Shown here one piece after another: positions 11,177 through 57,644 of a stretch of 64,000 bases of DNA; the stretch's first letter is position 1, and each line of letters begins with the position of its first letter. The DNA lies in contig NIVC01001563.1 in the NCBI GenBank assembly GCA_002269645.1, positions 62,001-126,000 on the forward strand. Direction: 5' to 3'. The notes below the pieces were generated by a model. That model was not told the DNA's origin. It saw nothing but the letters and a program-made list of their open reading frames with translations, and ran no database searches. The DNA comes from Macrostomum lignano. Lineage: Eukaryota. Made by a program: the position numbers and the translations under genes.

Positions 11177-12154
11177 TTATTGCTTGGATTTGGTCTTGGA
11201 AGGCGACGACGATGTCGAAAAATCGCCGTTATCGCGTCGACGCCGCTTCTCGGCACTGCCGCCGCCTCCAGAGGACTTCGATGACGATGAAGATGAAGAT
11301 GAAGTATCTGAATTCGATGAAGAGGAGGAGGCTGAGCGAGACCTGGGCGCTGTTGCCGGTTCCCGTTTCCGGTCGTCGCTACTCGCAGCCGGCTTAGCGT
11401 CGCCGTCCTCCGCCCACAGATTGTACTTTGCCAGATCGCCTTCGTCGTCGTCCTCTTCCTCGTCTGCAGCTTCCTCTTTATTCTCTTCATCTCGCCGATC
11501 GTACGCTTTGTCAGCTTTGCCTTTGCCTCGTCCATCATCGTAATCTCGTTTCGAGCTCGACGAAGCGGTCTCGGCCGGCGCCGAAGTCAAGCCTCTGTAG
11601 CGTTTCTTTTTCCGGCCAAATTCGTCGTATTCGCCGTCCGATCCGGCGTCGTCGTCGATGGCGCGCCGGCGCCGGCGCTGCTCATCATCGTTGCGCTCCA
11701 TGTAGCCGCCGCCTAGGCCGGTGCGCTGGCCCAATTGTTGAGTGTCGCGCGACGTATTGCACACGTTGCAGATATTCCGCCTGGCCCAGTTGATGTTGCC
11801 GCAGCTGCGACAGTTCCAATCGTCCGGGCTAAACAAGCCTTTGCTTTTCTCGGCCATTTGCCGGCCAATCTCGGACGATTGGCGAGAGCCGCTCCGGCTG
11901 CCGCTGCTACTGCCGTGACGGTCACCGTGACGGTCGCCGTGACGGTCGCCGTGCCGGTCGCCGTGCCGGTCGCCATACCGGTCGCCATGCCGGTTGCTAT
12001 GCCGGTCGCGGTCGCCGCTGCTGCCATCGCCGCCGCCGACGCCACGCGGCTTGCCGCACCGGTTGCAACGGTCCCGCTTAGCGTAGTTCACGTTGCCGCA
12101 TTTGGCGTCCGGGCAGCGCCAGTCGTCCCGTTTTGGCACGAATTTGCCGGACAT
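11177..12154 (-). CDS. ZRANB2: Zinc finger Ran-binding domain protein 2-like splicing factor (325 aa, uninterrupted ORF)
   Basis: Two RanBP2-type C4 fingers (DWRCPDAKCGNVNYAKRDRCNRC; DWNCRSCGNINWARRNICNVC), then family motifs RTGLGGGYMER, GEYDEFGRKKKRYRG and DDDEGDLAKYNL. Confidence 0.92.
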   Translation of the reverse strand: MSGKFVPKRDDWRCPDAKCGNVNYAKRDRCNRCGKPRGVGGGDGSSGDRDRHSNRHGDRYGDRHGDRHGDRHGDRHGDRHGSSSGSRSGSRQSSEIGRQMAEKSKGLFSPDDWNCRSCGNINWARRNICNVCNTSRDTQQLGQRTGLGGGYMERNDDEQRRRRRAIDDDAGSDGEYDEFGRKKKRYRGLTSAPAETASSSSKRDYDDGRGKGKADKAYDRRDEENKEEAADEEEDDDEGDLAKYNLWAEDGDAKPAASSDDRKREPATAPRSRSASSSSSNSDTSSSSSSSSKSSGGGGSAEKRRRRDNGDFSTSSSPSKTKSKQ

Positions 12155-18127: not shown

Positions 18128-20624
18128 CATGGGTCCCCAACCTGCGGCCCGCGAGCCCTTTTTGTGTGGCCCGCGGCACCTTCCAGTAGTTTGCATTACA
18201 TGCGGCCCGCCGAGTCTATCACTGGATTTCACTGCGGCCCCCGAAAATGTTAAAGTTTTCCTAGCTGTATTGAAAATATGCCCAGAAATCTCTTACCCCC
18301 CCAACCGCTAGAAGCGACGCTTCAATTCATTTGGATTGCTATTTTAGCCACTCCTAGCGCACAAATGTACATGCAGTCAAGAGTTGAAGTGAAAAGTAGG
18401 AAGGAATGCTAGCTAATATCAATAAGGTTCAAGGCAAAGGAGGTGGGGGTTGGGGGTAAGGGAAGTGAGGGGAAGCAGTGTACACATGTTGTGTACACTG
18501 TACACACATGAAAAACCCCCCTCACCCCCACTCCCCTATTCCGCTCAAAGCCAACCCAATGTACATGCATGACTAACTGTACACCACTTAGTCTTACCGA
18601 GTCCCAACCCCAGTTCCTTAAAATGGTGGACCAGTAGCAAGGAGTAACTCTATAACTCAGTAACTCTATAGTTCCAGATGGCACACGCTGCAAAAAAGAG
18701 GAAGATCGCGGAGGAGAAGCGCTCCTTTAATGCCGACTGGTGTCAGTTCTTTTTCGTGGAGCGCAAGGGGAAGCCGCTGTGTGTCATCTGCCAGGAGACG
18801 ATCGCCGTATGCAAGGAGTTCAATGTGAAGCGGCACTTCACCACGAACCATGCCAAGTTTGTGGACATGCCGGAGGACAAGCGCAAGACTGAGTTCACTC
18901 GCTTGGCAGCCAACTTGGACCGGCAGAATGCCCTCTTTAAAAAGCCTGTGAATCTGGCTCAATCTGCCGCAATCCGCAACACGCGCGCCAGCTACCGAGT
19001 TGCCCACCTGGTAGCGACCCAGCTAAAGCCCTTCACCGACGGGGCATTTGTAAAGGAGTGCATGATGGCCGCTGTAGAGGAAGTCTGCCCAGAAAAAAAG
19101 GATCTCTTCACCAACATCAGCCTCTCTGCTTCCACCATCACTCGCCGCATTGAAGAGATGGCAATCGACATTCGTTCAACGCTTAAGCAGCGCTGCCACA
19201 GTGCACGTTTCTTCTCCATTGCCCTCGACGAGTCTACCGACGTCAAGGACACAGCTCAGCTCGCCATCTTCTTTCGTGGCGTCACGGACACCTTTGACGT
19301 AGTGGAAGAATTCGTCCGGCTGATGCCGATGCAAGGAACCACCACTGGTGCCGACATCCTGCAGTGCGTGCTAAAGTTGGTGCAGGAATTCGAGCTGGAT
19401 CTATCACGCCTGTGTGCCATTACCACTGACGGTGCACCTGCCATGGTTGGGCCAACCAAGGGCTTTGCTTCCCTCCTGGTAAAGCACTGCCGGGACCAGG
19501 GACATATGCAGGACATCATGCGCATCCACTGCATCGTACACCAAGAAGTCCTCTGTGCAAAGTCGACCACCATAACGTCCGTTATGGGCGTCGTGGTGAA
19601 GGCGGTGAATTTTGTGCTAGCTCGGGCCCTGAATCACCGCCAGTTCCGGGACTTGCTGTCAGAGGCCAAAGCACAGTATGGGGACCTTCTCTATTACTGT
19701 GAGGTGCGCTGGCTCAGCCGCGGGAAGATGCTGCAAAGAGTCTTCGATCTGAGGGAGGAGCTAGCCGACTTCTTGGATTCAAAGGGAGCTGCTGTCCAGG
19801 AGTTCACTGACCCAGCGTGGGTGCAAGACCTCGCCTTCCTTGTTGACCTGACTGGGCACCTCAACACCCTGAACACCCAGCTGCAAGGCCGTGGCGTCCT
19901 TGTGCCAGACATGATAAACAAGATCAAGGCATTCGAGACCAAGCTCAGGCTGTGGGAAGCACAGATAAAGAATCGAGAGCTCACACACTTTCCCAACCTT
20001 GCAACTTTCGAGCTGACTAATTCAGCTGCCCAGAAGTACGCTGACGCCCTTTCGGACCTGAGGGACGAGTTCGCCAACCGCTTCTCGGAGTTGCGAGCGA
20101 ATTCAATGGAGCTGAAGCTATTCAGCAGCCCTTTCGACCTGGATGCTGATGAAGTGCCTGCCAATCTGCAGATGGAGCTCATTGAGCTTCATTGTTCTGA
20201 CGAGCTCAAAGCAAAGTTCGGCTGCACCTCCCCAATGGGATTTTGGAGCCAGGGCATCAAGCCTGCTGACTTTCCAGGCCTCGTCCTACACGCCACGAAG
20301 ATTGCTGCCATGTTTGGTTCTACATACGCATGTGAACAGCTCTTCAGCCGAATGAAGCTGACCAAGAGCAAAACTAGAGCGCAGTTGACTGACGGCCACC
20401 TCGAAGATGCACTGCTGCTCGCTGTTTCGTCGATCAAGCCAAATGTTGAACTGCTGTCGAAGGATAAGGAGCACCAGCCATCTCATTGATTTTGTTTGAC
20501 ATTTGGAAATGGACATTTTTGCTTGGTTTTGTGTATTTCATGTTTTGTGTATTAGCATGCGGCCCGCACACACCAAGCCAGTTGTCAATGCGGCCCGCCG
20601 CCCATAGAAGGTTGGGGACCCCTG
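18128..20624 (+). mobile_element. Full-length hAT DNA transposon, Buster/SPIN/Charlie group, 2497 bp
   Basis: 16-bp TIRs CA(T/G)GGGTCCCCAACCT; perfect 8-bp TSD ACTTAAAT (18120-18127, 20625-20632) with the central TA typical of Buster elements; subterminal GCGGCCC repeats at both ends. Confidence 0.96.
18678..20489 (+). CDS. hAT transposase (GTF2IRD2/SPIN/Buster-like), 603 aa, uninterrupted
   Basis: BED finger CVIC...RHFTTNH; catalytic ALDESTD, TTDGAPAM and CEQLFS; HCIVH and RWLSRG motifs; C-terminal dimerisation region RAQLTDGHL. Confidence 0.95.
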   Translation: MAHAAKKRKIAEEKRSFNADWCQFFFVERKGKPLCVICQETIAVCKEFNVKRHFTTNHAKFVDMPEDKRKTEFTRLAANLDRQNALFKKPVNLAQSAAIRNTRASYRVAHLVATQLKPFTDGAFVKECMMAAVEEVCPEKKDLFTNISLSASTITRRIEEMAIDIRSTLKQRCHSARFFSIALDESTDVKDTAQLAIFFRGVTDTFDVVEEFVRLMPMQGTTTGADILQCVLKLVQEFELDLSRLCAITTDGAPAMVGPTKGFASLLVKHCRDQGHMQDIMRIHCIVHQEVLCAKSTTITSVMGVVVKAVNFVLARALNHRQFRDLLSEAKAQYGDLLYYCEVRWLSRGKMLQRVFDLREELADFLDSKGAAVQEFTDPAWVQDLAFLVDLTGHLNTLNTQLQGRGVLVPDMINKIKAFETKLRLWEAQIKNRELTHFPNLATFELTNSAAQKYADALSDLRDEFANRFSELRANSMELKLFSSPFDLDADEVPANLQMELIELHCSDELKAKFGCTSPMGFWSQGIKPADFPGLVLHATKIAAMFGSTYACEQLFSRMKLTKSKTRAQLTDGHLEDALLLAVSSIKPNVELLSKDKEHQPSH

Positions 20625-25408: not shown

Positions 25409-28400
25409 TCAATCACTGCGCTCGTGGGAATAGAGCCTAGACAGAGTCCGCATGATAGATAGCATAGCGCTGCCAGGCACAGTCACTGTGTTCATAGTCT
25501 GCGCTAGCATGGCCTGATTTCGCTTAACCAAACCGGCCAAATCATTATTAGCCGAAGTTAGCGACTTTTCACCGCCGGCTATTGGCGACCAGAGCTTCAC
25601 GTCGTAGTCGATGCCGCTGGTTGCCAGGTAGAGCAGGCTGGGATGCGGCGCCACCCGATTCACCACCCGCTTGTCGGCCAGGCAGGCGTTCAATAGGCGG
25701 CCATCGCTGGCGCGCCAGACAAGAAAGTGTCCGCAATCGCTGCCGGACAGGACATAATTGGAGCCCCAGAATGCCGCCTGTTGGATGCAGGTGCGCGCGT
25801 TCCGGTGGCCCTGGAACACCCGGCACACCGGATAGCTTGGATAGTCGGTCGCCGATTCCACTTGCGAGCCGCTGTCGGCCAGGCCGCGGCGATTTGACTG
25901 ACATGGAGCGGCGCGGGTGGCGGCGGAGTCAGCAGGGACTGAGGCTACGGAAGCGGCGGAGGCGGCGCCAGCTCCATTGCTGCTTGAATTCGACAGCTCG
26001 TGCGGTTCCGACGAAGGCGCCGGCGTCGGAGGCTCGGAGTGGCGCTGTCGAACTGCGGGCACCTCGTCAGAGGTGTCATCGCTGTCCTCTGGCAGCGGCG
26101 GGTTCTGGCCCTCCTGGTCCATCGGCTGCTCGGACGCTGCAGCGCCGGCCGGATTTCGCTGTCGATTGAGCTGGTAGGCCCGCATCATGAACTGCCCGAG
26201 GCGCTCGCTGTAGTCGCCTGAGCCGCGGGCGACGCCGCCATCGTTGCCGCCACCGTCTCCGCTGCCACTGCCACCACCGCCGCTGCCGCCTCCTTCAGTT
26301 GAAGACGACGGCGGCTCGGAGCCCGGCCCGGTGTCGGACCAGTCGCCGCGGAAGCGAAACACGATTCGACCTGACGAGTCCTCGGCTGGAACGGCGTCGG
26401 TTGGCAGCGGGCCGCCGTGCAGCGGATCGCAGCCGGCGTTGGGCGCGGCGGTCAGTTGCGACTGAGGCACAGTCTGCTTGATGTCGAACAGGTAGAGACT
26501 GCCGCCATTGTAGGAGGCCAGCAGCTGGGTTGCACTCGGATTAAAGCTTAGGCTGGTAACGCGAACAAGTCGCTTTGAGCTGAGCACTTCAACAGGTTTG
26601 GACTGGCTGACCCAGCGACCGTAGCCGATGCAGCGCCGATCATATTCGCCAATGTAGCCGTCCTTGTCGGCCACGAATAGCCGCTCTCTGGCCAGCGGGT
26701 GGACGGCGGCTGCCGTGTAGCCATAGTAGCTGGGTTGTGAGGTGGGCCGGGGCTGGCGAGCATCGGTCAGAGAGCATCAGTGAGCATCAGTCAGTGAGCA
26801 TCAGTCAGTAAGCATCAGTCAGTGAGCATCAGTCAGTGAGCATCAGTCAGTAAGCATCAGTCAGTAAGCATCAGTCAGTGAGCATCAGTCAGTGAGCATC
26901 AGTGAGCATCAGTCAGTGAGCATCAGTCAGTGAGCATCAGTCAGTGAGCATCAGTCAGTGAGCATCAGTGAGCATCAGTCAGTGAGCATCAGTCAGTGAG
27001 CATCAGTCAGTGAGCATCAGTCAGTGAGCATCAGTGAGCATCAGTCAGTGAGCATCAGTGAGCATCAGTCAGTGAGCATCAGTCAGTGACCATCAGTCAG
27101 TGAGCATCAGTCAGTGAGCATCAGTCAGTGAGCATCAGTCAGTGAGCATCAGTCAGTGAGCATCAGTCAGTGAGCATCAGTGAGCATCAGTCAGTGAGCA
27201 TCAGTCAGTGAGCATCAGTGAGCATCAGTCAGTGAGCATCAGTAAAAGGTCACGAGTCGCGTTCTCACCGGCAGTGCTGGTTGGTGAGCAGCACAACATG
27301 CCTGGAGTCGGGCTGGCGCACATCGAACTGTCTGAGAGTGCCGTCGGCGCTAACGCTAAGAAACAGGTCGGCCTCAGTGGGGCTGGTGACAATGTCGAAC
27401 ACGGTGGCCCTGTGACAGGCGTAGGAGCGAATGTTGCCACCATCGTTGCTGGCCTGGCCAAGGTCGATCAAGTTGATTTTGCCGTCGCCAGCTGCCGATA
27501 AAATTTTTAGATCATCTGACATTGGCAGGAATTTTGAGCTGAATATGTTCGCCCGGTGGCCAGATGCAATCGAGTGAGACTCGGCCTGGTTAATTTTAAG
27601 TATTCAGGCATAATTTCATTTGTAGCTACTTATCAGTAGTGTGCTGGGCAAAGACATGCAGGCCTGGACCCTATTCATACAATGAGATGCAGTGCTATCT
27701 ATATATAAGCCTTTGGATACAATTACTCAAGATTTCACTACATTCTTCTGCAGCAACTAAAACACCTGCTTTCATTACCATATGCCCTGTTCTGTTTGCC
27801 ATTATTTTGCAATGCAAAGCAATGTTCCAAATTCAACCTGCATGCATGCAATAGTTTTGGATTTGTTTAGTTTTGATACCAAAAACCATGGTTGGGAAAG
27901 ATTTGAATCTCTTTCTAAAATAGACAGGAGCTACAGGGTATTAATCAGATAGTTAAAGGCTTAAGAAATATTAACTAGAGAAAAAAGTCAAATAAAAGTC
28001 TAATGGAAATTGTAAAACATCTCAATAATTGTTAAAATGGTTTATGACTTATTGAAAGCAACTTAGCTTACCAAATGACTAAATGGAGATGTTATAGCAA
28101 CATTGCGATCATCTGAGCCAGACAATAAGTAGCGCCCATTAGAGCTCCAACACACTGAATTAACCTACAAAAATGAAAAGGAAAATTCTTGATGATGATG
28201 ACTATGATGACTAATAGTCATCAAGTTTTTAAAAGATATACAATAGAATTAAAGAACTCACACAACCAGAATGCACAGGAAGAATTTTTTCCAATGATAG
28301 TCGCATTACACTCCATTCAAAGTCTAAAAAGGTTAGAAAATGTTTAAATGTTTATCTTCTTTATTAAACTTTTACTATATTATATTTATTTCCAATAATG

Positions 28401-35560: not shown

Positions 35561-35889
35561 GCCTTAGATGTGCCACGCAATAGTTGTGGCTGACCTATTG
35601 GTTGCACATGTGCCCATGTGCCCATTGAAGTTGGTTACATTTGGATTAAACATTGTCTACAAATATAGCTAATACCCCAATGAGGTCTCTGAAGCCATTT
35701 TTAGATATTTTTATACCAAACTTAGGTACATCATTTTTTATGGAAACTACCTGGTATATAATGCTAGCCAGCTAATATTATATTATGCAAGCAATTAATA
35801 AATTTATCTTTATCAAGAAGTCTATCTTAAAGGTGTAAAGAATTTCAGTAGCTAAAAATTCAGTTTCAGTTTTAATGATTATTTTACAG

Positions 35890-38800
35890 GGAGACCCTGA
35901 GTCATTGATCATCACACCGCAGAGCTTTGCAGCACTGCTAGGTGGCAGCTTTCAGGTGAGAAATTGTATATTTATTTAGAGAACTATGGATTAATAAACA
36001 GAATTTATCTAATAAAAATGGATCCAAAAGTAATTTCTTATTTGCATTCAGTCTAGAGAGACTTTTATAAAGCAAAAAATGAACTTAGGTCCTAGTTTGG
36101 TCAGGTTATTTTTCTGTACCAACAGCAGTGAATTCAACTTTATCAATTAAATTAAGCTGCTGCTGATCGACTGCCGCTCGTTCCTTGAGTTCAACACCAG
36201 CTGCATACGCGGCGCTATCAATGTGTGCTGTTCGCGGCTTGTTAGGAAACGTCTGCAACAGGGCAAGGTGAGGAGTAACATGTGTTGTGTAATAATTGGC
36301 AAATATATTGTTAAAAATTGATTTATGGAGTCGGCCACTTATGTGATCAACGAGTGTCCAGTGAGACATAACGGTAGAAATTAAAATAAAAGCCACAGAT
36401 TCTATATTATCTATATGTGTCACTCGCAGCATTCTCCCAGCACTCCCCCACAGACACCCCCACAGGCCACAGACACTGGGTGCTGCTAATGCTTGAGAGC
36501 AGCAAAATCTTTACTCTATGGTCCTAACCCTCAGGGTTTTCGCGCTGCGGGCCAGGCGGCTAGAGTGACATTAATCTGAGATAAAGCCTGCATGAGCTGT
36601 CATAATCTATGGGCCAAAAGTACGAGCTAGATGCCCGAAATCTGCTTTGAGCTGCTTTGGCATTTTATATTTAGATAATTCTCTTGGTTGAACAGTGGCC
36701 TATCCAGGACGTCAAGGTTGAGGCTGATCTCTCCCGTGGGAAAAAATAAATCTTTGTGCTCAATCGTCAATTGGATATTTTTCATTTTACGAGGGAGAGA
36801 GAAGCTTCTCAAGCCAGATTCAATATTTTCTACCGCCGCTACGCGCCACCATTTGATGCGGATAGTGTTACGCCCGCCTGCTTGTCATAGAGAGGGAGGT
36901 TGGGAGGTTTCGGTTGGTAGCAAATAATAAGTGATAAAATCGCATATCCGATCCGATTAAACTAAATCTCCGCTGAGGTCTCCTACCCTGCCTCATAGTA
37001 TGCGTCACCCAACATTGCGGTTTGGCGTAGCGCCTCCCCCCACCCTCCAAGATCAAGGCCAATAATGCCGACCGTGTGCAAAATGACGTCAGCGTGTGTT
37101 GCAGTCGTGCGCGTAAATGTTAGCTATAAAATATATTTAATCGTATAGTCCTATGCCTGTTAGCATAAGCTGTTATATACATGTGTGTGATTCGCTTGTT
37201 ATAGCAACCTTTAACAGCTACTTGTTATCCAGCGCAGTCTGTGTTCTGACTATTCTGACTCATTCTGCATAGAGTGCACGCATTAAGCGAGGCTCTTTCA
37301 AGGTCAAAAACGCTTTTTTTAACTAACCCCATTTAACCAAGTAAATTTCTGATAGGAGCATTTTCAACTGGGATGATCAATAATTCATTGTTCATTATGA
37401 GCATTTCCAACTATGTAATCAATGTTTATTATGAGCATTTTCAACTAGGTGATCAATGCTCATTATGAGCATTTTCAACTGCGATGATCATTGCTCATTA
37501 TGAGCATTTTCAACTGCGATGATCATTGCTCATTATGAGCATTTTCAAATTGGGATGGTCATTGCTCATTATGTTCATTTTCAACTGGGATGATCATTGC
37601 TCATTATGGTGATAAGGGGCTCTTAATTGGAATGACTATTACTAGTATCGGGATTTTTAGCAGGATGGCCATTGCTCGTATTGGGATTTCTAAAGATGAC
37701 TACTTCTCATATTGGGATTTTTGATGGGGATTTCGAGATCAAATCTGCTCAGTTCCTCGGAATGCTCAGCTCATACGCAGATTTTCGTGGAGGCCGGTGG
37801 GTTGGGAGATTTTCGCCGGATTAGAGGCATCTGTTGCTATTAGCTAGTCCCGAGGGATGTTCTGTAAATTTTTTTCCGGCTTATTTGCTATTCATATCTT
37901 CACTTACTTTTCTGTGTGTATAACAAAAATCATCTATCCTTTTATTACTGCATTCTCAAATATTGATTGCGCAACCAATTTGCATGTTTCTGAGTAACTG
38001 ATTTTACATGTATAATACTGTTACAGAAGGGCAGGCTGTTTGTGCGTGTATAGAATGTGTCATCGAGCTTGCTATATTAGATTAGCTACTTAATAATAGT
38101 GAGCTGTAGTGGCTTAGGTAAGCCTGGACAATTGAGAATTGTGTGAGAACTATAAACGATTACTCACACTTAAGCTAAACTGCAGAGACCGAACATTCGT
38201 GCGTGTGAATAATTTCACGTTTACCTTGCGGGTACGCGGCTGTCTGGCCATACACCCTAGATCCATTGATTTTCCCCATTACTGTAGAGTATCCATATTG
38301 AGTTTATAGTTGTTTTTTGTAGAGTAGTGAATCCCGGATGGCTTGTGTGACACACATGATTGACAAACTTGTCCGATATGGGTAAGGCGTTAGTTTCTGT
38401 TTATTTACTCTGCGTAAATTAATGAAATATGATGGTTAGATATGGTATTTGCGTTCTATTGAGGCCGTAGTCTAGTGTTTTAGTGCCTAGTGCGATTCCA
38501 GGTGTAGTTGCATTAATTTGGGGCTAAATCGGAATCTCAGCTTGGCTCTGCTTGTGCAATTAACGCCATTGAGGGCCAATCCCACAAGGCACAGTGAAGT
38601 GTACATGCCTAACCATAAATAAAAGTTAGGGCCGCTGTACAGATCATGTGTGAGTGTGTGCCTGTGCGGATGACTGCTCAGGGGAGTCGACGGAATGGGC
38701 AATAATGCCTCTCGCAGGTATGTATGTGACAGTGACAATGTCGATTATTAAAGTGCACCAGGGTGCATGTAGCTCCCTGTCTTTAATAAAGAAATAACGT

Positions 38801-41800
38801 CTTATACTACTGAATTATAAGTAGAAATAAGAGATAGATTCCGTATTATGAAATGAAATTTATGAAGAACGCTGGCTCATACAGGGAAGTAAAGAAATTT
38901 CAGTGCAATGTGTTTTTGTTTACTTCACTTAACATCTAAAAATAGTAGTTTGTAAAGTGTCAGATGGAGCTTACTTCGCGTTAGTCTGCTTGCCCGCGAC
39001 AACTGAAAATAAGAATACGCGAAATCGATAGCCCCTATAGCAGGCAAGGTGCGTGTTTACCTTACCTTATTGTACCTGCGCTGTGCACCTGACTGACTGA
39101 CTCATCGGCCCGCACTGCTATAGCCTCGATAGCCTGCTTATTGCTAGAAATACTTCAACTTAGATTTCCTGTTTGCGTCTCCTGCTGCCAAATATAGATA
39201 GAATTATTGTTTTAAGTAAGCTTAAGTAAAATCCCGAGGGCAACGCGTGTTGATTAACCGTTTTTTAATTATTATGGTGCCTGTGATTATCAAAACTGTT
39301 AATTAGATTTAACCATCTTTATTTTAATAGAAATTTCTCGAATACAGAGTGTTCGGCCCGTTAATAATTTGTTGTCTCAAGGCTAGTTCAAGTTTCCAAT
39401 TGAATTTTATTTAGTAAAAGAAGCGACCATGAAATCTGGGAAGTCTACGAAAAAATGCCAAAATTGCTAGAGTTATGCTTTCGCTCTACTATAAGTAGCG
39501 TTTATTTTTAAGCGATTGATTAGTAAGATATTTAAATTCAGTTTTATTGACTGCATTTAGCTGCGCAATCCAATGCGTGACCTGTCGCGCCCTCATTTTT
39601 TACCCAATTCACTTCAAGCAGCTTCTCCTCCCTCGGGCCGGACAATTACGTAATTGAGGGGAGTGGGCGAGCGTGTGTTTTTCTTTCTTACTTCTCTCCT
39701 CTCCTCACTCACTCCGCGCATCATCGTCACTTTGTGGCGGTGACTAATGCTTAATGCTGGGCTTGGGCCGCGGTTTTGCCTCGATTGACCTCCCTTTTCT
39801 TCTCTTTTTTTCTAACCCGCAAATCTTCCTGTTTCCCTTGGGAGACTTCTGGTAAGCATAAGTCCTGGCATATCGAGTCACGGTGCGTATGCGCCAACTA
39901 TATGGGGCATATATAATGTTTTTTTCTCAATTTTTATGTTTTATAGGCTCTCCAATCCCTATTCCCTTGAGCGGTTTCTTAAATTTTTGTCTACCTGGCT
40001 TTAGCTCCCTCCCCGAGCTCTTGCGTTGCATAATAATAATCCCACTAACGGATGCTGGGCTTTGGGATTTGAGAATCCGGTGCTCAGGCAGTTGAATTGA
40101 ACAGTTTAAAAAACTGTTTATTGGTACGCGTTGCCACTGCACGGCCGTTGTCAGCGCTTGTATAATAATAATAATATTAATAGTTGTGTGTAAAGAGTGA
40201 GTCAACGTATTTATTGCTTGGGCGTATGGCATTGGGAAATGGGAAAGGAAAGAAAATGAAAGGGATGAGGGAGAGACATGGGAGGAAGAGAGAGAGCGAG
40301 GGGGGTGTTCTGGGTTGTGACCTTAGCTGGCAGTGCTTCAGCTGGGGAATTGCTCTGCATTATAGTCACTTTGGTGGTTAAAGTGGCTGCTGATTCGTGT
40401 CACCAGTTCTAATTGAATTGAACCGGGAGCGTTGGCTAAACAGAAGACTGTACGATCTTGTAGATTGCCTGATTCCCAGTCTGGGAGGATGAGTGACCTT
40501 GTGTAGGCTTACTAAGAATAACCGTTAGGAATGACGATTGACCTGCTAGGGGATTTAGGGAGGGCGAGTGACCTAGACCTACTAGGAGTCCCAGTTAGAG
40601 GCCGAGTGACCTAGAGCCATTGAGTGTGCCATCTAGAGAGGCCGAATGACCTACACCTACTGAGAGTGCCATCTAGAGAGGCCGAGTGACCTAGACCCAC
40701 TGAGAGTGCCATCTAGAGAGGCCGAGTGACATAGACCCACTGAGAGTGCCAATTAGAGAGGCTGAATGACCTAGACCCACTGAGAGTGCCAATTAGAGAG
40801 GCCGAGTAACCTAGACCCACTGAGAGTAACAATTAGAGAGGCCGAGTGACATAGACCCACTGAGAGTGCCAATTTGAGAGGCCGAATGACCTAGACCCAC
40901 TAAAGAGTGCCAATTAGAGAGGCCGAGTGACCTAGAGCCACTTAGAGTGCCAATTAGAGAGGCTGAGTGACCTAGACCCAGTGAGAGTGCCAATTAGAGA
41001 GGCCGAGTGACCTAGAGCCACTTAGAGTGCCAATTAGAGAGGCTGAGTGACCTAGACCCAGTGAGAGTGCCAATTAGAGAGGCCGAGTGACCTAGAGCCA
41101 CTTAGAGTGCCAATTAGAGAGGCCGAGTGACCTAGACCCAGTGAGAGTGCCAATTCGAGAGGCCGAGTGACCTAGAGCCACTAGACCTAGAGTGCCAGTA
41201 CTCCAATTGCAATGAATATTCCCTAAACTTTGAAAATTTTCCGCAGCTGTCAATCGACGATCTGATCGCCTCGGGCAGTCCTGGCGGCGCTCGAACGCCT
41301 CCGTCGCCGAAGTCGCCGCCAGCTGGGGAAGCCTCGGCATCGGGAGGCGCCGAGAGTTCTGGCGTGCAGGCCGCCAAGGGCCCCGAGCCCGACCTGGTTG
41401 TTGTGTACGATCAGTGCTCAGATCGGCCGCCAATTGAAGCGGGCGATTCCAGCTTCCTAATGCTGCTGATGCAGCGCCTGGTGCGACAGTACAAAGCTGT
41501 CCGCCTGCTGCAGGGTGAGGCTGCTGATGACTCACTGCCCCCCTCTCCCTCTCTCTCAAGCCGGCTTCTTTTGAAGTTATGATCTGTAGTTGAGTGGATG
41601 GACGATCTAGATAATTTCAATTTTCCTCCCAACAAGTAACTATAGGATGAATTGAACTTTTTTGTAACCATTTACAATCCCCTTCTGAGTCACTTCGAAT
41701 GGGGGGAAGTGGATCCTGTTTCTGGACTCGGAAATCGGTTCTGAATAGAAGTGGCCGCGCCTGGTCCTAGGAATTTATCTATCCGCATGTGTGCGCGCAG

Positions 41801-44800
41801 TCATAGCGTTCAGATACAGCCCTAGATTTTTAGCTATGACTAACAATCTTTGTTTAAGTGCTTTAAAGCGTTTAACCCAAGCGCTGTCTTTCTAATGCTG
41901 TCTTGGGTTTGGCGGTCTACCCCGGCAGTTACTAGCTGAAGTAGCAAATTACTCATCTTATTGCTTAGTCACAATTTAGCCGCTTTATTTCGGCACCCAC
42001 CCGCCAACTATATAGACTTTGCTAGTTTTTGTTGTTTGTACGACATCTTGAATAGCTTTGGAGGTATCACCCGAGTTGTCTTTGTCTTATCATAGGTTCA
42101 TGCCCAAGTTGCTAGTTTGTTCCCAGTTGTCTCATTGGGTGAGATTTTGAAACTTCTGTGTCTCGCTGGTTAAGATTTTAACCAACGTTGGCTCGTTAGG
42201 ACTTCTGTGTCTCACGGGTGAGATTTTGGCACTTTGTGTCTCATTGGGTGAGATCTTGGGACCTCTGTGTCTCATTGGGTGAGATTTTGAGACTTCTGTG
42301 TCTCACGGGTGAGATTTTGGGACCTCTGTGTCTCATTGGATGAGATTTTGAGACTTCTGTGTCTCACGGGTGAGATTTTGGGACCTCTGTGTCTCATTGG
42401 GTGAGATTTTGAGACTTCTGTGTCTCACGGGTGAGATTTTGGGACCTCTGTGTCTCATTGGGTGAGATTTTGAGACTTCTGTGTCTCACGGGTGAGATTT
42501 TGGGACCTCTGTGTCTCATTGGGTGAGATTTTGTGACTTCTGTGTCTCACGGGTGAGATTTTGGGACCTCTGTGTCTCATTGGGTGAGATTTTGAGACTT
42601 CTGTGTCTCACGGGTGAGATTTTGGGACCTCTGTGTCTCATTGGGTGAGATTTTGAGACTTCTGTGTCTCACGGTTGAGATTTTGGGACCTCTGTGTCTC
42701 ATTGGGTGAGATTTTGAGACTTCTGTGTCTCACGGGTGAGATTTTGGGACCTCTGTGTCTCATTGGGTGAGATTTTGTGACTTCTGTGTCTCACGGGTGA
42801 GATTTTAGGACCTCTGTGTCTCATTGGGTGAGATTTTGAGACTTCTGTGTCTCACGGGTGAGATTTTGGGACCTCTGTGTCTCATTGGGTGAGATTTTGA
42901 GACTTCTGTGTCTCACGGTTGAGATTTTGGGACCTCTGTGTCTCATTGGGTGAGATTTTGAGACTTCTGTGTCTCACGGTTGAGATTTTGGGACCTCTGT
43001 GTCTCATTGGGTGAGATTTTGAGACTTCTGTGTCTCACGGTTGAGATTTTGGGACCTCTGTGTCTCATTGGGTGAGATTTTGAGACTTTTGTGCCTCACG
43101 GCTGAGATTTTAGGACTGCTGTGTCTTACAGATTGCGTCTATTTAAAGTATTTTTGCATGCTTTTTAGGTTGCTTGAAAATAAGAAATTGGTTGGGTAGC
43201 AGGTGCTTAGCTGCTATTGACGGCATCTCCTTGTTATTCCTTTGAAGCAGCAGACTCGCGCCGCAGCTTTCCTCCCGAGTTGGGAGTCAGTTGTCTCTGT
43301 TGATTAAAAAGTAGATTATAAAAATGCAAAAAGAATTGGATATGGGGAGCCTATTTAGACCGGTTATTAATCCACTGGTTGATAATCTGGCAGTTCGCAT
43401 GAGTCACCAAATTGAAATATGGCCATAGCCAGACCGTATACAATACGCAGGTCCTTCCTGTTTCATATATCGGCCATTTTATTTATGTTTGTTATACTAC
43501 GGCTTAATCAAGGACAGCTTAAGTAGAATTCTGGTTTCTTAGAAAATTTTGAGAGCTCATTGTTTTGTGATGGAATAAACGAATAAATGAAAATTTCCTA
43601 TCTCCGTAGTGTATTTTCCTGCGCAAACCCAGTCCTGCTCAAGTCGTCCTTGGTCTTGTGGGTTAATGTTACAACAACTGAGTCATTGCGCTTGTTTAAG
43701 GAGGCCGCACTATTAGCTAATAATATTTATCAAGTGCTGCTCTGCGGCTGACGAATTGTCAACGCTTTGTAGTGAGCTGGCACGTGCGCGCAGTCATATG
43801 ATGTCAACACATCCAGCGCACTCTCAGCCCGTCCAATGTATTTTTTTGTTTAAAAAAAGAAAACGCGCTTAGTCAGATTCTCTGTTCAACTGGCGACAGG
43901 GGCCGCTCGGGGGGGGGGGGGTAGCCCCGCTGCGTTGGCCTTAGCAACGGGAGTGGGCTTGGTTGGCAACGCTACGGAGATTCCCCTCTCTCAACCCCAC
44001 CCCCACGTCCCCTTATTGTCGCCCGCCCACTTAGTCAGCATTTCAGCCTCTCAGTTCTAATTAAATACTGCCGCTGGGTACATTGCTTGTGCGTGTTTCT
44101 CTTTTTCTAAAACCTATTCGGGAGAGAGGGCGGCGTTGCACATTGCTATAGTGATAGTCGCTCGCTGATTTGCTAAGGCTGTCCACTGAGGGAGAGAGAG
44201 CAGAGTGCGCCCGCCTCACACCCCTTGCATTTATCTTTTCTATAACTTATTCGACTCTCGGGATAGGAGGGTGCGAGTTATATCAACACGCGGCCATATT
44301 GCTCTGTCACCCTGTCCTCCTGTCCGCCCAGTCATCATTTTTTATTAATCTTCTACTGTGATCGATTTGCCCGTCACGATTTGCAATAAGCATGCTTGAA
44401 AATCGTGGCGGTACCGGCGGCGGCGTTAACGCCATCGTCACAGATCAGCCCCCGGCCGCCTCTGTCGTAGTCAATAGGCCCCGGCCTCCCTGTCGATTGT
44501 CCCTATCGACGCCAATGGCCGCTGCTTTAGCCTCTCCGTTGAGCCCAATCTCGGCTAATCCATGCGTTACCATGGCAACAACGCCGACAACAAATTTGGC
44601 GCGAAAGCGTCGCACCTGTATGGGTAAGTATCGATTCAAAAAGGATTAGCTAGGGCCCCTAATTGCCGTAGAATCCTCATTAGAAGCTGGGGTGTGGCTT
44701 GCATTTTGTCACTCTGCGCTGCTCCCATCGCTCAGCCCCGCTCCAATCTGCTTTGCTTTGGTTTTGACTATTTTCTGCCGCTTTTTTGCTATCTTAGCAA

Positions 44801-47800
44801 AATCTTGTAACCATTTTGATAGCTCAAACAGATTTTATAACTGTCCCGTGTGTGTCTAGCTATTTCCTATATCAGGCTTAGCTATTTCCTATATCAGGCT
44901 GAGCTACTTCCTATATCAGGCTTAGCTATTTCCTATATCAGGCTTTGCTGTTTCCTATATCAGGCTTACCTACTTCCTATATCAGGCTGAGCTACTTCCT
45001 ATATCAGGCTGTGCTACTTCCTATATCAGGCTTAGCTATTTCCTATATCAGGCTGTGCTACTTCCTATATCAGGCTTAGCTATTTCCTATATCAGGCTGA
45101 GCTACTTCCTATATCAGGCTTAGCTATTTCCTATATCAGGCTTTGCTGTTTCCTATATCAGGCTTACCTACTTCCTATATCAGGCTGAGCTACTTCCTAT
45201 ATCAGGCTGTGCTACTTCCTATATCAGGCTTAGCTATTTCCTATATCAGGCTGTGCTACTTCCTATATCAGGCTATGCTATTTCCTATCAGTCTGAGCTA
45301 TTTCCTATATCAGGCTTTGCTGTTTCCTATATCAGGCTTACCTACTTCCTATATCAGGCTTAGCTATTTCCTATATCAGGCTGTGCTACTTCCTATATCA
45401 GGCTGTGCTACTTCCTATATCAGGCTGTGCTACTTCCTATATCAGGCTGTGCTATTTCCTATATCAGGCTGTGCTACTTCCTATATCAGGCTTGCTACTT
45501 CCTATATCAGGCTTAGCTACTTCCTATATCAGGCTGTGCTACTTCCTATATCAGGCTTAGCTACTTCCTATATCAGGCTGAGCTACTTCCTATATCAGGC
45601 TTAGCTACTTCCTATATCAGGCTTAGCTACTTCCTATATCAGGCTTAGCTACTTCCTATATCAGGCTGAGCTATTTCCTATATCAGGCTGAGCTACTTCC
45701 TATATCAGGCTGAGCTATTTCCTATATCAGGCTGAGCTACTTCCTATATCAGGCTGAGCTACTTCCTTATATCAGGCTGAGCTACTTCCCAGAATCATGT
45801 CAACACTGTTACCAGCCTTTCTACTGTGAACTGAGTTTTTATTATGAAAAATCTTCTCACCTCTAGGCGGCTTCCTCAGCTTCTCGGCCGGCTATCCGCA
45901 GCACTGCGAGTCCAAGACCAGCCAGGACCCGGAGGCTAGCGAGAAACCCGCAGCTGAGCCTTCCGCTATCAGCCAGGGCCCGACTCGGGTGCTCAACTTT
46001 CTGTACGTCGGTTCGCAAGCCGACGCTCTAGACGAGGAGGTAATCAGACGGCACGGCATCACGCACATCCTGAACGTCAGCTCCTCCTGTCCGCAGTCTC
46101 GGCACGTGTCGCCTGATAATTTTCTACGCATCTCCGTTAACGATGGTTATGTTGACAGGCTGTTGCCGCATTTTCAACAGGCGTTTCAGTTTCTTGGTGA
46201 GCAATTCTTTTCATTAACATTTTTTATGGAGTTAACGATACCTACTAGCTCAGCGACTCTCGCGCCACGAACCCTGGTTCGATTCCTTGTGCGGCCACAT
46301 CAGACGGTTAGAAAATCAGGGCCGCTGTACACATGACTCAAAAAACTGTAATGTGACAGAGAGGCGACTGACTGTTCAGTCGCGAGAGCATCACGTCAGT
46401 TGCAGAATCCTAGTAAGAGTCGTGAAAAGTTATCCAAGAATCGTTGTGTTAGCGCTTAACTTTCTACTAACTAAAGTAGACTAAATAGAGTTTCCATAAA
46501 TGAAAAATGCGATTCTTATTCACAAAGTGACGCAGATGGCTTTAGACGCAACTCAGTGATTCTAAAGGGACTCAGGCATGTCTGAGATCCGACTCTACGC
46601 CCCCCCGAGTCATTATAGAAGCGCCCCAGAGTCGTTTCAGAGTCGCAGGCAATAAAACATCTCAAATTTATCTTTGACGACTTTTTGGCAACTTTTACCG
46701 TGGCATCTAATCGTTCTAGAGTTGTCTGGACTCACTTCTTTCCTCTTTTGATGCCGGTGACTCTAGGACACTTATTGGCCTTGGTACTGTTTTCATCGGG
46801 TCGTGCACAAGCCCCAAATGAGTGTGGCCGCGCACGCAATCGAACCCACGTACCACTGAGCTACTCCGCCCCATCGCATAGAAAGGCTTGGCTTTCTTAG
46901 GCTCGTCTCAGTTTGCATTCGCCATTCCATCGGTCCTTCAATTCAGAAAATGTCCGCGAAACGTCCGGCCGCTGTCTCGTCCACTGCCTGGCCGGCATCT
47001 CGCGGTCGCCCACGCTTTCGATCGCCTATATTATGAAGCACAAGAAGATGTCTCATGAAGATGCCTACAAGTAGGAATTTGTTAATTATTATTATTTCAA
47101 TTGTGTAATATTAGTTTCTGTAGGGAAATGTTTCATTTACTTTGCTATCCACATTTCCGCAGATTTGTTAAAGAGAAGCGCACCAACATATCGCCAAACT
47201 TTAACTTCCTGGGCCAGCTGCTTGAATTCGAAAAGCAATTGAAACGTTCGGAGAGCTTCTCCGAAGCCGCCTCGCCATCCGGCGGCGGTGGCGGCAGCGG
47301 CGGAGACGGCAGCGACTGTTGGGAGGCGAAACGACAGCGCACGACCGTCGCGAGCAGCCGCAGCCAGCCAGCGGGCTTCCTCCGGCCGCCGCCGCCTCCG
47401 CCGCTGCCAGCCTCGGCACAGAGTCCCACCACGGCGCTATCGCGGCTGTCCTTCACGCCGTGCGCCTCGGCGGCCGCCCTTCAACATCACAACCACCTGC
47501 CGGACTTTCCCGGCACAAGCCTGGAGCAGGTGGCCGTCACGCCCTGCCGGTCCGCCTCTGCTGCCACCTGCTCCGCTCCACCTACTCCGCCACCTCCGCT
47601 CACGTCGGCTCTGCCTCCGCCGCCGCCGCCTCCGGCGCCAGTTCGCACCACCAGCCGTCGAGTCAGCGGTCAACAGGCATCGGCAGGCAGCGGATCTTCG
47701 GCAGCCTCGCCGGCAGCGTCTTCGAATAGCGGGCAAGCCAGCCGACCTCACAGCGTTGTGCTGTCGGCTGCCTCTGCCGCCGCCGCTGTTCGCAAGAGCC

Positions 47801-48063
47801 AATCGGAGAATCACCTGCTCAGCGAGGAGGACGATCGAAGCAGCGGCAGCAGCAGCAGTTTGGCGGCCACTTTTGCAGCGGCGGCTGCGGCGGCGGCTGC
47901 TGCGGCGGCGGCTGCAGCCGTGGCGGACGGCGGCCGGTCCCGCTCAACGGAGAACCTGGCAGCTGACGCGGCCTGCGCGGCTAGCGGCGGCAGCATGAAG
48001 TCGCTGTCTAGTAGCGCTTCTAATGGGTCCCACGGCAGTCAGGAGATTCTCACCTATTCATAG
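35890..48063 (+). CDS. DUSP16: Dual-specificity MAPK phosphatase, DUSP8/DUSP16 (MKP-7, VHP-1) type; exons 35890-35955, 36157-36267, 41247-41514, 45867-46196, 46947-47070, 47163-48063; start exon upstream and uncertain
   Basis: Phases close (0,0,1,1,2; 1800 nt). Rhodanese/KIM domain (LLIDCRSFLEFN...SRLVRKRLQQGK, VVVYDQ, LLQGGFLSF), catalytic HCLAGISRS and ISPNFNFLGQL, and a C-terminal GSQEILTYS like DUSP8/16 GSMEIIEVS. DUSP8 versus DUSP16 orthology is not resolvable here. Confidence 0.88.
37084..37091. promoter_or_regulatory. Perfect CRE palindrome TGACGTCA in a DUSP intron
   Basis: Sequence match only. Confidence 0.35.
37365..37610. repeat. 34-bp minisatellite (TTTCAACTGCGATGATCATTGCTCATTATGAGCA)
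   Basis: About 7 diverged copies in a DUSP intron. Confidence 0.85.
40565..41185. repeat. 40-bp minisatellite (TGAGAGTGCCAATTAGAGAGGCCGAGTGACCTAGACCCAC), ending ~60 nt before a DUSP acceptor
   Basis: About 15 tandem copies. Confidence 0.94.
42140..43115. repeat. 61-bp dimeric minisatellite (alternating 30- and 31-bp GAGATTTTG...TGTGTCTCA units)
   Basis: Strict A/B alternation over ~15 dimers in a DUSP intron. Confidence 0.96.
44392..44623 (+). CDS. Putative alternative first coding exon of the DUSP (77 aa + 1 nt), giving a 528-aa isoform without the rhodanese domain
   Basis: ATG-initiated open frame ending ATG G|GTAAGT (perfect donor, phase 1), compatible with the phase-1 acceptor at 45867. 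Confidence 0.65.
44566..44579. promoter_or_regulatory. RFX X-box-like palindrome GTTACCATGGCAAC
   Basis: 13/14 match to GTTGCCATGGCAAC; a second looser site GTTGGCCTTAGCAAC at 43934-43948. Confidence 0.4.
44858..45788. repeat. 22-bp minisatellite (CTATATCAGGCTTAGCTACTTC), ending ~80 nt before a DUSP acceptor
   Basis: About 42 tandem copies. Confidence 0.96.
46540..46872 (-). mobile_element. SINE-like element with a truncated tRNA-like head, in a DUSP intron
   Basis: Minus-strand head GGGGCGGAGTAGCTCAGTGG...GGTTCGATT (boxes A and B, compressed); body homologous to 2810-3040; similar head at 53222-53257. Confidence 0.6.
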
Positions 48064-54670: not shown

Positions 54671-57644
54671 TCAACAGATGTCGTGCCACTGGTGCACCGT
54701 GCTGGGCTGGTTCCGGAAACAGTCGCTCCATTGGGCTGCCCCGCTGCCTCCGGCGACGCTCACCGGCCCGATGACCGCCCGGCCGAGGAGGCGGGCGCCG
54801 ACCATGGCCATGCGGGTGCGGGCGCAGGCTACCACCATGAGGTAGGTCTCGCCGTCATCCTGAGCGCCCGGCGCAACTCGGAACCGGAACTCCTGGTTGA
54901 TAGTAGACAGCTCGGCTGAGCTCGATAGCTTCAACGGCGGGCCTTTGCGCGACTTCTTTTTGCGCTCTTGGCGCATCAGGCTGACTCGGAATTGCACTGA
55001 GACTGTTGGCGATAGAGGCGGGGTGGGTTAATCGATGTTTTGTTAAACCTGTTGCTTAATATAATGGACATTTTTCTTAGAAATAAGCTTTCGAGGAATC
55101 GAATTTCTCTCGACCGAATCTTTCTATGGCAAAACTCCATTCAGCGCCATCCATGCGGTCTTGAGAGCACACTAAATGCGACAAATATCCGTTCCTTACC
55201 GGCCTAGGAACCATGGACAGCTAAAAAACCTTCTGGACTTCCCATTTGCAAATGGACGAAGCGTGCATTTTGTCCGAGATGATCCGAGTCTCTTTAGCTA
55301 ATGCTTTAAAATGCTAAAAAGCCAGCGAAATGTGGACGATTTGCAAGTGCAGAGGCTCCTACCTCGTCTGAGGATCTGAGATAAAAAACACACATCTGCC
55401 TAGTGCTCGTACTTCTTCCAGTCAGACAGTCAGTTACCTGACCTGTGTAGATGAAGTATGTTAGCTTTTTACCTGTGCCTGCTGACTGCTCACAATGAGC
55501 ACAATGCCCGGATTTGGGACCGGCTCAACGAGAGCTCTCTCTCTCTCTCTCTGCCTCTCAATAAAAGTCATCACTAAGCCTGCATATTAGCCTGGGCAGG
55601 CCCTGGGATCGGGAAGGGACTCACCGTCAGTGTCTTTCACTCGGAGGTCGCGGCACTCGAGTAGGCCAACGGTGAGCAGGCGCTGCTTCTGGCTGTAGGC
55701 CAGCGAGGCGTGCAGGCGGCTGGGAGGCTGGCCCGGCCGGCTCTGCGGAGGCGGAGGGGGGAGGCGGTTGCGCGAAGCTGCATGTAAAGACAGAAAGAGC
55801 AGACTAAATGGCTGCCCATGCAGTCCAAGCCAGCTAAGGGGCTTTGGGTGTGGCCAAATATGGAGCCGAGCGAGACCCCATGGCTGCACTTCTAATAAAC
55901 TATTTAGTCTGGGGCCAACTCAAAGTTAATGAGGAAGTGAGTAAACACGATACCAAGAGGGTTGTCGACAGTGCAATTTGATGGAGCATTGGGCTCGTTA
56001 TCGTTTACTCTAGCGTCTATAGCAACCGACATCTTGATTAACTGCGCTATTGGAGTCAAGGTCATTAATCAGTTAGGCGATGCGATCTTATTAGCTAACT
56101 CGGTTCGAAGTCAGAGATCCATCAAAGTTTGCGCGCACTGTTTGTGAAAAAGTACAAACTGGACCTCTTCGAAGCGAGACTGGACTTCTTCTAAACAAGA
56201 CTGGATCTCTTGTAAAACAAGACTTGACCTCTTCTAAAACAAGACTGGACCTCTTCTAAACAAGACTGGACCTCTTGTAAAACAGGACTGGACCTCTTCG
56301 AAGCGATACTGGACCTCTTCGAAGCGATACTGGACCTCTTCGAAGCGAAACTGGACCTCTTCTAAAACAAGACTGGACCTCTTCGAAGCGAGACTGGACC
56401 TCTTCTAAACAGGACTGGACCTCTTCGAAGCGATACTGGACCTCTTCGAAGCGATACTGGACCTCTTCGAAGCGAAACTGGACCTCTTCTAAACAGGACT
56501 GGACCTCTTCGAAGCGAGACTGGACCTCTTCTAAACAGGACTGGACCTCTTCGAAGCGAGACTGGGACGGCCCCAATAGCCTAACCTTAGTAGATATGCA
56601 CCTTGTCAAAGAGCATCTCAGCGGAACTCTCCAAACGCATCAACTCACAGCCAACTCGCTCGGTGGAGTTTGCAGGTCGCGCCAGAACTCGTGACCGCCG
56701 GCGCCCAGCTTCAGAAGCGGAGCCGCCGGGATGCTGCACACGCCCAACAGCTGCGACTTGCCGCGGAAGCTGGTCGCCCGCTCCTTGACGCGAAAGACGA
56801 GCAACAGGTCGCGCGCCGCCTCCTCGCTGTCGCAGTGCAGCACAAAGCGACGCTCAAGAAATTTCGGATTGCAGGCGGCGCTCACAAGCTGGGTCCGGTG
56901 CTTACCGCCGTCCGGGCCGGCTCTGAATGACACGTAGAAGAAGCTCACGTTGCCAGGCAACCGGCTCATCAGGTGGCGCGCCTCCAGCACAGTCACGGCC
57001 AGCCGGCCGCCTGACTCCATCTCCAGCCGGACGCACAGCCGGCCAAGCGAGGTCTCGTGGCGAGCCGAGCCGCAGTCCGAGTCGGCGCTTTCGGCGCCAC
57101 GGTACAGGTTGACGTCGATGCCGAACTCCTCCAGCAGCGAGGCTGTTGTGTCGGCGTCTCTGCTGGATGACCCGGACTGCGGTAGCTGCTGCTGGTCCTG
57201 CACGTCGCCCTGACTCCGGGCTCGCTGGCGTCGAAGATAGTCAACGGCGCCGCCAGCGCGGCTTCGGGACGGCTGGCCGCTTGACGGCTCCTCTACGGAG
57301 GTGCCGCTGCCGATTCGTCGGCCGCCTCGGGTGGTGAAGGTCCGGTAGCTGGCCGGCTGCTGCAGCGGCACGGCGATACCTCCGCGGGTCTCGTCGACCG
57401 TGCGGGCCGACATCCAAGCGAAGCAGCAGTTGCTGTCACGCCGACTGTCGCTGCTGCTGCTGCTGCCACCGCCGCCACTGCTGCAGCTGCTGTTGTCGCT
57501 GCTGAAGATGCTCCGGCGGAAGGTTTTGGCTTTTTGCTGCTTCCGCCTGCGCCACAGCCAGAAGCCGGCGGCGGTGGCAGCAGCCGCAGCGACGCAGACC
57601 GCTGCCACACCGGCCGCCAGAATGGCCGCCTCGGCTGCCTGCAT
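54671..57644 (-). CDS. Synaptotagmin-like protein: N-terminal TM, linker and two C2 domains; exons 57644-56649, 55742-55625, 55002-54671 (481 aa)
   Basis: GT-AG, phases close (0,1). Hydrophobic N-terminus followed by RRRKQQK; C2A LGRLCVRLE...LAVTVLEARHL...NPKF...LLG; C2B LHASLAYS...LTVGLLECRDL...INQEFRF...QWSD...VHQWHDI. Confidence 0.82.
56155..56545. repeat. 21-bp minisatellite (CTGGACCTCTTCGAAGCGAGA) in synaptotagmin intron 1
   Basis: About 18 tandem copies. Confidence 0.94.

Follow-up and report, generated by a model that had tools for sequence, protein, structure and literature searches.

A 64,000-nt stretch of the Macrostomum lignano contig NIVC01001563.1 (positions 62,001 to 126,000 of the forward strand; hereafter the window) carries a gene for a mitogen-activated protein (MAP) kinase phosphatase, the rhodanese domain of which is split by a long intron. 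Inside this intron lies an open exon starting with its own ATG. The question raised by this locus is whether the exon provides the gene with a second 5' end and, with it, a second mode of MAP kinase recognition. The answer favoured here, which is regarded as probable, is that the locus is a DUSP8/16-type gene with two alternative 5' ends, one giving a form with the kinase-binding domain and the other a form with a linear docking motif (D-motif). An initial annotation of the same DNA had reached a similar interpretation, which is partly supported by the analysis reported here.

A phosphatase gene with two candidate 5' ends

The exon in question starts with the ATG at 44392, with an A at position -3, and covers 77 codons plus 1 nt. 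It ends in ...TGT ATG G/GTAAGT (here and below, a slash within letters marks a splice junction). The nearest in-frame stop upstream is located 30 nt 5' of the ATG, and the minus strand was found to hold no competing open reading frame (ORF) across it. Joining 44392-44623, 45867-46196, 46947-47070 and 47163-48063 produced an open coding sequence (CDS) of 1587 nt for a product of 528 aa (short form), which contains HCLAGISRS, the VNDGY acid loop and FNFL. In the model of the long form, 35875-35955, 36157-36267 and 41247-41514 are joined to 45867, giving 604 aa. Phases fit and frames are open in both models. The host intron separates '...AVRLLQ/G' from 'GFLSFSAGYPQHCE' and thus splits the rhodanese domain. 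The coordinates and translation initially reported for the ATG-initiated exon, its donor, its phase and its position in this intron were all confirmed. The features are as follows.

35875-35955 (+), canonical coding exon 1, MIILQGDPESLIITPQSFAALLGGSFQ; genomic ATG at 35875
36157-36267 (+), canonical exon 2, first half of the rhodanese domain; basic cluster of the kinase interaction motif (KIM), SRLVRKRLQQGK, at 36232-36267
41247-41514 (+), canonical exon 3, remaining rhodanese domain to ...AVRLLQ/G; phase 1, GTGAGG donor
41515-45866 (+), long-isoform intron of 4,352 nt, holding the alternative exon and two tandem arrays
44359-44361 (+), upstream in-frame TGA, from the translation of the region
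44392-44623 (+), candidate alternative first coding exon, 232 nt, GTAAGT donor, phase 1
44464-44505 (+), docking-motif-like peptide VVVNRPRPPCRLSL, short-form residues 25-38
44624-45866 (+), short-isoform intron of 1,243 nt; acceptor ctctag/GC at 45866/45867
45867-46196 (+), shared exon, last rhodanese element GGFLSFSAGYPQHCESK, linker and start of the catalytic domain
46947-47070 (+), shared exon, active-site loop HCLAGISRS at 46982-47008
47163-48063 (+), shared last exon, FNFL at 47200-47211; low-complexity tail with AKRQR and SPTTALSRLSF; ends ...SQEILTYS, TAG

The first of the tandem arrays in the host intron (42199-43126) consists of 15.2 copies of a 61-bp unit with 97% matches. The second (44858-45789) has 42.5 copies of a 22-bp unit and occupies 932 nt, or 75%, of the short-isoform intron.

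In Pfam searches the long form matched both Rhodanese (33.7 bits, cut-off 22.2) and DSPc, the short form DSPc alone, in agreement with the initial statement that the short product lacks the KIM and rhodanese domain. The DSPc match (134.7 bits) extends across the full profile, and both the active-site signature (HCxxGxxRS) and the VNDGY general-acid loop are present. When compared with solved structures, the catalytic domain scored highest against DUSP16 (164.8 bits), followed by DUSP8 (155.4) and DUSP10 (121). The N-terminus of the long form matched the DUSP16 kinase-binding domain structures 2vsw and 3tg3, and the FNFL segment ISPNFNFLGQLLEFE is identical in register to that of MKP7 in 4yr8. 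In a neighbour-joining tree, the window gene and two groups of Macrostomum paralogues were placed inside the DUSP8/16 clade, together with vertebrate DUSP8/16 and homologues from molluscs, mites and nematodes. Insect Puckered and 'DUSP10-like' proteins formed a separate DUSP10 clade; they score 146-180 bits against DUSP10 and about 100 against DUSP8/16, whereas the window gene shows the reverse. By scores and tree, the window gene is classed as a class III (JNK/p38) MAP kinase phosphatase of the DUSP8/16 type. An assignment as Puckered orthologue was considered and rejected on the same grounds, the gene being merely Puckered-like in its working.

A 153-aa rhodanese-only gene model of M. lignano (P0121, UniRef A0A1I8J5B3), which begins MIIFQGDPESL, matches the rhodanese part of the window gene with 100% identity. 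A second copy of this model differs at three positions.

The window exon and its Macrostomum relatives

The best database matches to the short isoform were Macrostomum and related proteins without a rhodanese domain. These belong to two groups, one beginning MVLCRKFRPERLTF (group A: P0001, P0002; PAA66250.1/PAA60843.1) and the other MVLCRKNRPCGLKF (group B: P0003-P0005; BOX15_Mlig009817g1). All start with MVLCRK[FN]RPxxLx[F], aligned as MVLCRK[FN]RP[EC][RG]L[TK]F. With MAFFT, the window peptide VVVNRPRPPCRLSL aligned to both groups without a gap, with V26, R29, P33 and L36 invariant, while the remainder of the 77-aa peptide aligned weakly up to the GGF junction. Among 66,148 six-frame 13-mers of the window compared with the paralogue N-termini, VVNRPRPPCRLSL ranked 9th, which corresponds to p ~0.009 for the 77-aa peptide. 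The window gene, A and B form a lineage-specific clade with catalytic identities of 64-70%. Homology of the window peptide to the N-termini of transcribed short paralogues is supported by these alignments.

Conservation of the motif in relatives had been proposed as a check. It is seen in the paralogues, with which the conservation of the 77-aa peptide was assessed here; a protein search and exact look-ups gave no protein carrying the window's own 77-aa peptide. In a profile search of 1.84 billion representatives, the full N-terminal peptide was found in Macrostomum only. Comparison of the region upstream in the window with those upstream of the paralogues gave no significant noncoding similarity.

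The genomic copy of paralogue A (NIVC01001575.1, locus L001) is of particular value here. It holds intact rhodanese exons at 1464-1580 and about 5074-5142, with the same boundaries as in the window, 8.5 and 5 kb upstream. The Met-initiated peptide MVLCRKFRPERLTF... is contiguous with the GGF exon and reads through the acceptor ttatttcag/GC; it is annotated as PAA66250.1. Because the Met-initiated peptide runs into the GGF exon while the rhodanese exons stand upstream, group A is read as having the same dual layout as the window gene, with the peptide only possible as an N-terminus. For group B, the 10 kb upstream yielded no rhodanese exon, so that its rhodanese exons would either have been lost or lie more than 10 kb away; its GGF remnant is degenerate. 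The paralogue tree has the topology (A,(W,B)), where W is the window gene. The dual layout therefore appears, most parsimoniously, to predate the paralogue split. An intron between peptide and GGF exon is present only in the window copy; since A and B have none at that position, the intron 44624-45866 looks specific to the window copy among the paralogues.

In three Logan contigs (L004-L006) from two sequencing runs, the CDSs of short forms similar to A and B occur without introns, preceded by 5' untranslated regions (UTRs) of 79-260 nt. As the genomic copies carry introns, the contigs represent spliced transcripts.

The window's own exon was also evaluated by its composition. No other open frame in the host intron is as long as its 95 codons, although the length alone is unremarkable. 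The codon log-likelihood of the exon (+17.3 bits) was the best of the six frames, the next one reaching 12.1, and exceeded that of all 6,697 windows of the same length taken from the introns of the gene (maximum 1.0). This excess mostly reflects exon-like composition. Together with the paralogues, these data support reading the exon 44392-44623 as an alternative first coding exon, which fits best with the sequences compared. From the relatives we infer that it is transcribed and translated, with use of the junction 44623-45867.

The nature of the peptide was then examined with docking patterns in the style of ELM and Zeke et al.; the JIP1 class is described by [RK]-P-x-x-L-x-[LIVMF]. On these patterns, the JIP1-class core is matched by A (RPERLTF), by B (RPCGLKF) and by human DUSP10 (RPQDLNL), with about 0.5% of shuffled sequences also matching. 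The window peptide fits only the generic D-motif pattern, as do 19% of its shuffles. Support for the JIP1 class is confined to A and B because the window motif fails the strict JIP1 core, and JNK-type specificity of the motif would accordingly apply to paralogues A and B only. The initial description as a JNK-docking-type peptide is thus borne out by the gap-free homology to the paralogue N-termini and reduced, for the window itself, to a generic D-motif. The two reference peptides with which it had been compared, RPKRPTTLNL of JIP1 and RPVRPQDLNL of DUSP10, agree with the supplement of Zeke et al. (2015). The SP/TP sites and the RKRR sequence, which had been listed as further features together with the idea of a different localisation, are not conserved in the paralogues and have no comparative support.

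For the short form, AlphaFold2 predicted no secondary structure in segments 1-3 and 8-112, which make up almost the whole of residues 1-112 and in which the predicted local distance difference test (pLDDT) score stays below 50; the catalytic domain was modelled with confidence. The input alignment was shallow (6 sequences). The model points to a largely disordered N-terminal region of 112 residues with the motif in an accessible segment.

Alternative accounts of the exon and other features of the window

Several observations weigh against an active short form of the window gene. The per-codon score of the exon is 0.23, compared with 0.39-0.67 in known exons, and the frame discrimination (17.3 vs 12.1 bits) is modest. 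For the 5' UTR of the A-like or B-like transcript L004, no significant alignment was obtained with the upstream genomic sequence of L001. The 528-aa and 604-aa products, the 77-aa peptide and the catalytic domain of the locus are all absent from 5.8 billion protein clusters representing 15 billion sequences, the 153-aa rhodanese-only model being the sole product of the locus in protein collections. The window motif, RPPCRLSL, has one extra residue and fails the JIP1, NFAT4, MEF2A and DCC patterns, in departure from the strict JIP1 core kept by A and B. Finally, and unlike in A and B, the peptide can be joined to the GGF exon only by removal of an additional intron that is 75% satellite.

The last three points would also be expected if the exon were a decaying or unused relic, that is, an ancestral D-motif start which here is no longer expressed or no longer docks, so that the locus makes only the long enzyme, or nothing. 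The Met placed directly before the motif in A and B is likewise absent from the window, where the ATG lies 24 codons upstream. This account is nevertheless considered unlikely, since a relic is difficult to reconcile with a 77-codon open frame headed by an ATG with A at -3, a consensus GTAAG donor in exactly the required phase and an exon-like composition that outscores every intron window. Moreover, the exon retains V, R, P and L at the conserved positions, and all the remaining exons of the gene are intact.

A second account leaves the short protein unchanged and assigns its 5' end to spliced-leader trans-splicing of the long pre-mRNA to an acceptor in the intron, whereby competition between cis- and trans-splicing would take the place of promoter choice. 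Trans-splicing is common in M. lignano: it affects about 30% of the genes, uses acceptors with the consensus [TC]TNCAG and adds a spliced leader with ATG at its 3' end (PMC8629364). One consensus-like site, TTTCAG/, is present 345 nt upstream of the ATG (exon start 44047). A leader added there, however, would with its ATG start an upstream ORF of 6 codons, and one added at the nearest AG (44390) would be out of frame, reading ATG CAT GCT TGA. Spliced-leader sequence was found neither in the window nor in any transcript contig; none of the three contigs of the relatives carries it, although assemblies may lose such sequence. An origin of the 5' end by trans-splicing is rated as improbable.

The same consensus is fitted at another place of the locus. 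Within exon 1 of the long form, the stretch 35875-35895 contains TTTTACAG/GGAGAC with the acceptor at 35889/35890. The start codon of the long form might be supplied there by the spliced leader, in frame (MGDPESL...), instead of the genomic ATG at 35875.

It had also been claimed that the exon cannot be a cassette exon. All of the 26 upstream AGs tested (43925-44391, the nearest one included) indeed hit stops in phase 1. The claim does not hold for three internal AGs (exon starts 44444, 44471 and 44531), which give open in-frame cassettes of 180, 153 and 93 nt, respectively, so that a long isoform could gain 31-60 residues between ...RLLQ and GGFLSF, the docking peptide being included for two of the three sites. 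Although the tract of the site at 44471 is moderately rich in pyrimidines (ccgcctctgtcgtag), a cassette is regarded as highly improbable, because an insert immediately ahead of the last rhodanese element would disrupt the fold of this domain, because the homologous peptide in A and B is Met-started, contiguous with the next exon and only possible as an N-terminus, and because the short forms of a beetle and of nematodes described below are likewise N-terminal.

According to the favoured reading of two alternative 5' ends, the long mRNA would use the exons at 35.9, 36.2 and 41.3 kb and encode the 604-aa enzyme with the rhodanese-type domain and the KIM basic cluster. The short mRNA would start inside the last rhodanese intron, most likely from an internal promoter, with translation from the ATG at 44392 and splicing from 44623 to 45867 giving the 528-aa enzyme. 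In this product, the folded kinase-binding domain would be replaced by about 110 disordered residues with an N-terminal D-motif peptide, presumably derived from a JNK docking site of the JIP1/DUSP10 kind. Both forms would share the catalytic domain and, in it, the FNFL motif for the JNK F-site. The predicted outcome is a docking switch between the kinase-binding domain (p38-type) and the linear D-motif plus F-site (JNK-type).

Other features were recorded in the window. In the intron 46197-46946, two 24-nt inverted arms (46276-46299 and 46823-46846; 88% complementary, 523 nt apart) contain the tRNA T-arm-like sequence GGTTCGATTCC. ARAGORN found no tRNA in this inverted repeat; the arms might represent paired repeat elements of tRNA origin. 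Neighbouring genes identified by Pfam are all on the minus strand and encode a proteasome subunit similar to PSMD3/Rpn3 (2200-4267), an LMBR1-like membrane protein (7523-9626), a RanBP2-type zinc-finger protein (11177-12154), a WD40 protein (25409-26674) and a C2-domain protein (56640-57644). On the plus strand, an uninterrupted ORF of 603 aa (18678-20489) shows weak, below-cut-off Pfam matches to the Spin-doc zinc finger and DUF4371, and may represent a transposase-derived gene or element.

Rhodanese-less forms in other animals

Human DUSP10 (MKP5) resembles the predicted system in several respects. It is a class III JNK/p38 phosphatase in which an N-terminal linear motif (...VVVALSRPVRPQDLNL) binds JNK, the rhodanese domain docks p38 and the catalytic domain binds the JNK F-site. 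Its residues 8-35, RVVVALSRPVRPQDLNLCLDSSYLGSA (RVVVALSRPVRPQDLNL...), include the JIP1-type core RPQDLNL (Zeke et al., 2015, PMC4670726), and residues 8-25 are resembled by VVVNRPRPPCRLSL of the window and by RKFRPERLTF and RKNRPCGLKF of the paralogues. The JNK motif was validated in cells via N-terminal truncation, and the division of labour between a p38-binding rhodanese domain and a JNK-binding linear motif has been described for MKP5 (PMC4670726). The catalytic domains of MKP7 and MKP5 (FNFL) bind the JNK1 F-site, while their kinase-binding domain docks p38 and does not bind JNK (Liu et al., 2016, PMC4802042). The docking modes are thus not novel, as the combination of a JNK D-motif with a p38-binding rhodanese domain was already published for DUSP10. 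In DUSP10, however, motif and rhodanese domain are part of one polypeptide, whereas here they would belong to mutually exclusive 5' ends. The window gene is moreover of the DUSP8/16 type, and its motif is shifted by one residue.

A similar layout was found in insects. Puckered and DUSP10-like proteins occur as long forms of about 400 aa with a rhodanese domain and as short forms of about 210-260 aa (about 400 aa in Diptera), many of which are labelled as isoforms by NCBI. The short forms start with M[RK]xK[RK]xxPCLxLx[FL], which joins directly before GG[HLF]xEF. Like the short form of the window gene, they lack the rhodanese domain and carry a basic-hydrophobic docking-type peptide joined to the GG[HLF]xEF remnant. 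They differ in belonging to the DUSP10-type clade (by the tree and PMC6264519) and in having a motif of the MEF2A/NFAT4 type rather than of the JIP1 type (patterns and Table EV3 of Zeke et al., 2015). In protostomes, an NFAT4/MEF2A-type motif has been reported at the same place as the motif of DUSP10 (PMC4670726). Dipteran proteins were present only as the short form in the data set examined.

The gene structure in insects was taken from the beetle Coccinella (P0139). Its DUSP10-type gene has an ATG exon (L007:9644-9707, MRVKRPNACLVLRFMPLQQTS) with a phase-1 GTGAGT donor, located inside the 11.4-kb intron that leads from the rhodanese exon to the GGH exon. Position and phase are those of the window exon. 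The N-terminus of the long Coccinella isoform (L007:2001-2060) was also observed to contain an NFAT4-type pattern, RDGLKLPL. In this gene there are therefore two different docking-motif first exons, one per isoform.

Within the DUSP8/16 type itself, rhodanese-less forms joined at the GGF point are annotated for the brachiopod Lingula (DUSP16 X2/X3), the crinoid Antedon (X2), the nematodes Mesorhabditis, Steinernema and Heterorhabditis, the annelid Owenia and teleost DUSP8. In Mesorhabditis belari both a short (P0262) and a long form (P0356) are annotated, with identical downstream sequence. These proteins belong to the same subfamily as the window gene, and several carry D-motif-like peptides, e.g. 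KPPRPHLFL in Mesorhabditis and KIYNHIKLKL in Owenia. In contrast to the layout proposed here, they are database gene models, some of them, such as those of Lingula ('MG') and Antedon, are without a motif, and none was found by profile search to have the Macrostomum peptide MVLCRK..RP..L.F.

In the teleost DUSP8 models P0278, P0315, P0320 and P0033, an alternative basic N-terminus (...MKLKIRVRRIKEGRDLR) is present at the GGF point, which fits none of the D-motif patterns tested. Vertebrate models named 'DUSP8 isoform X2' (P0074, P0080) were considered as D-motif forms and rejected; their starts fall inside the catalytic domain, and they resemble predictions that were truncated.

On the basis of these annotations, rhodanese-less isoforms at the same junction are already recorded in several phyla, and the layout is not unique to Macrostomum. 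The arrangement had been presented as undescribed for DUSP8/16-type genes, which is overstated, as isoforms of this kind are annotated for DUSP16, DUSP8 and DUSP10-type genes. Literature searches on docking and rhodanese domain of puckered and on isoforms of DUSP16 and vhp-1 found no paper describing the alternative rhodanese-less arrangement.

Tentatively, an ATG exon encoding a docking peptide, set in the phase-1 intron before the GG[FH]xxF exon, could go back to the bilaterian ancestor in class III MKP genes, of both the DUSP8/16 and the DUSP10/Puckered type, and provide each of them with a switch between p38-docking and JNK-docking enzymes. Puckered and paralogue B would then be cases in which the short form alone survived.

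Provided that the short form is produced, a single gene would encode two phosphatases which have the catalytic domain in common and differ in their recognition of MAP kinases, one using a folded domain of the kind that docks p38 in mammals and the other a linear motif of the JNK type. This would represent a simple genetic way of tuning JNK versus p38 feedback. M. lignano serves as a model of regeneration, a process in which JNK signalling is important. In the family at large, the rhodanese-less Puckered of Drosophila may have originated by fixation of an old alternative-first-exon isoform, and many of the models labelled 'isoform X2' in other phyla may have biological meaning.

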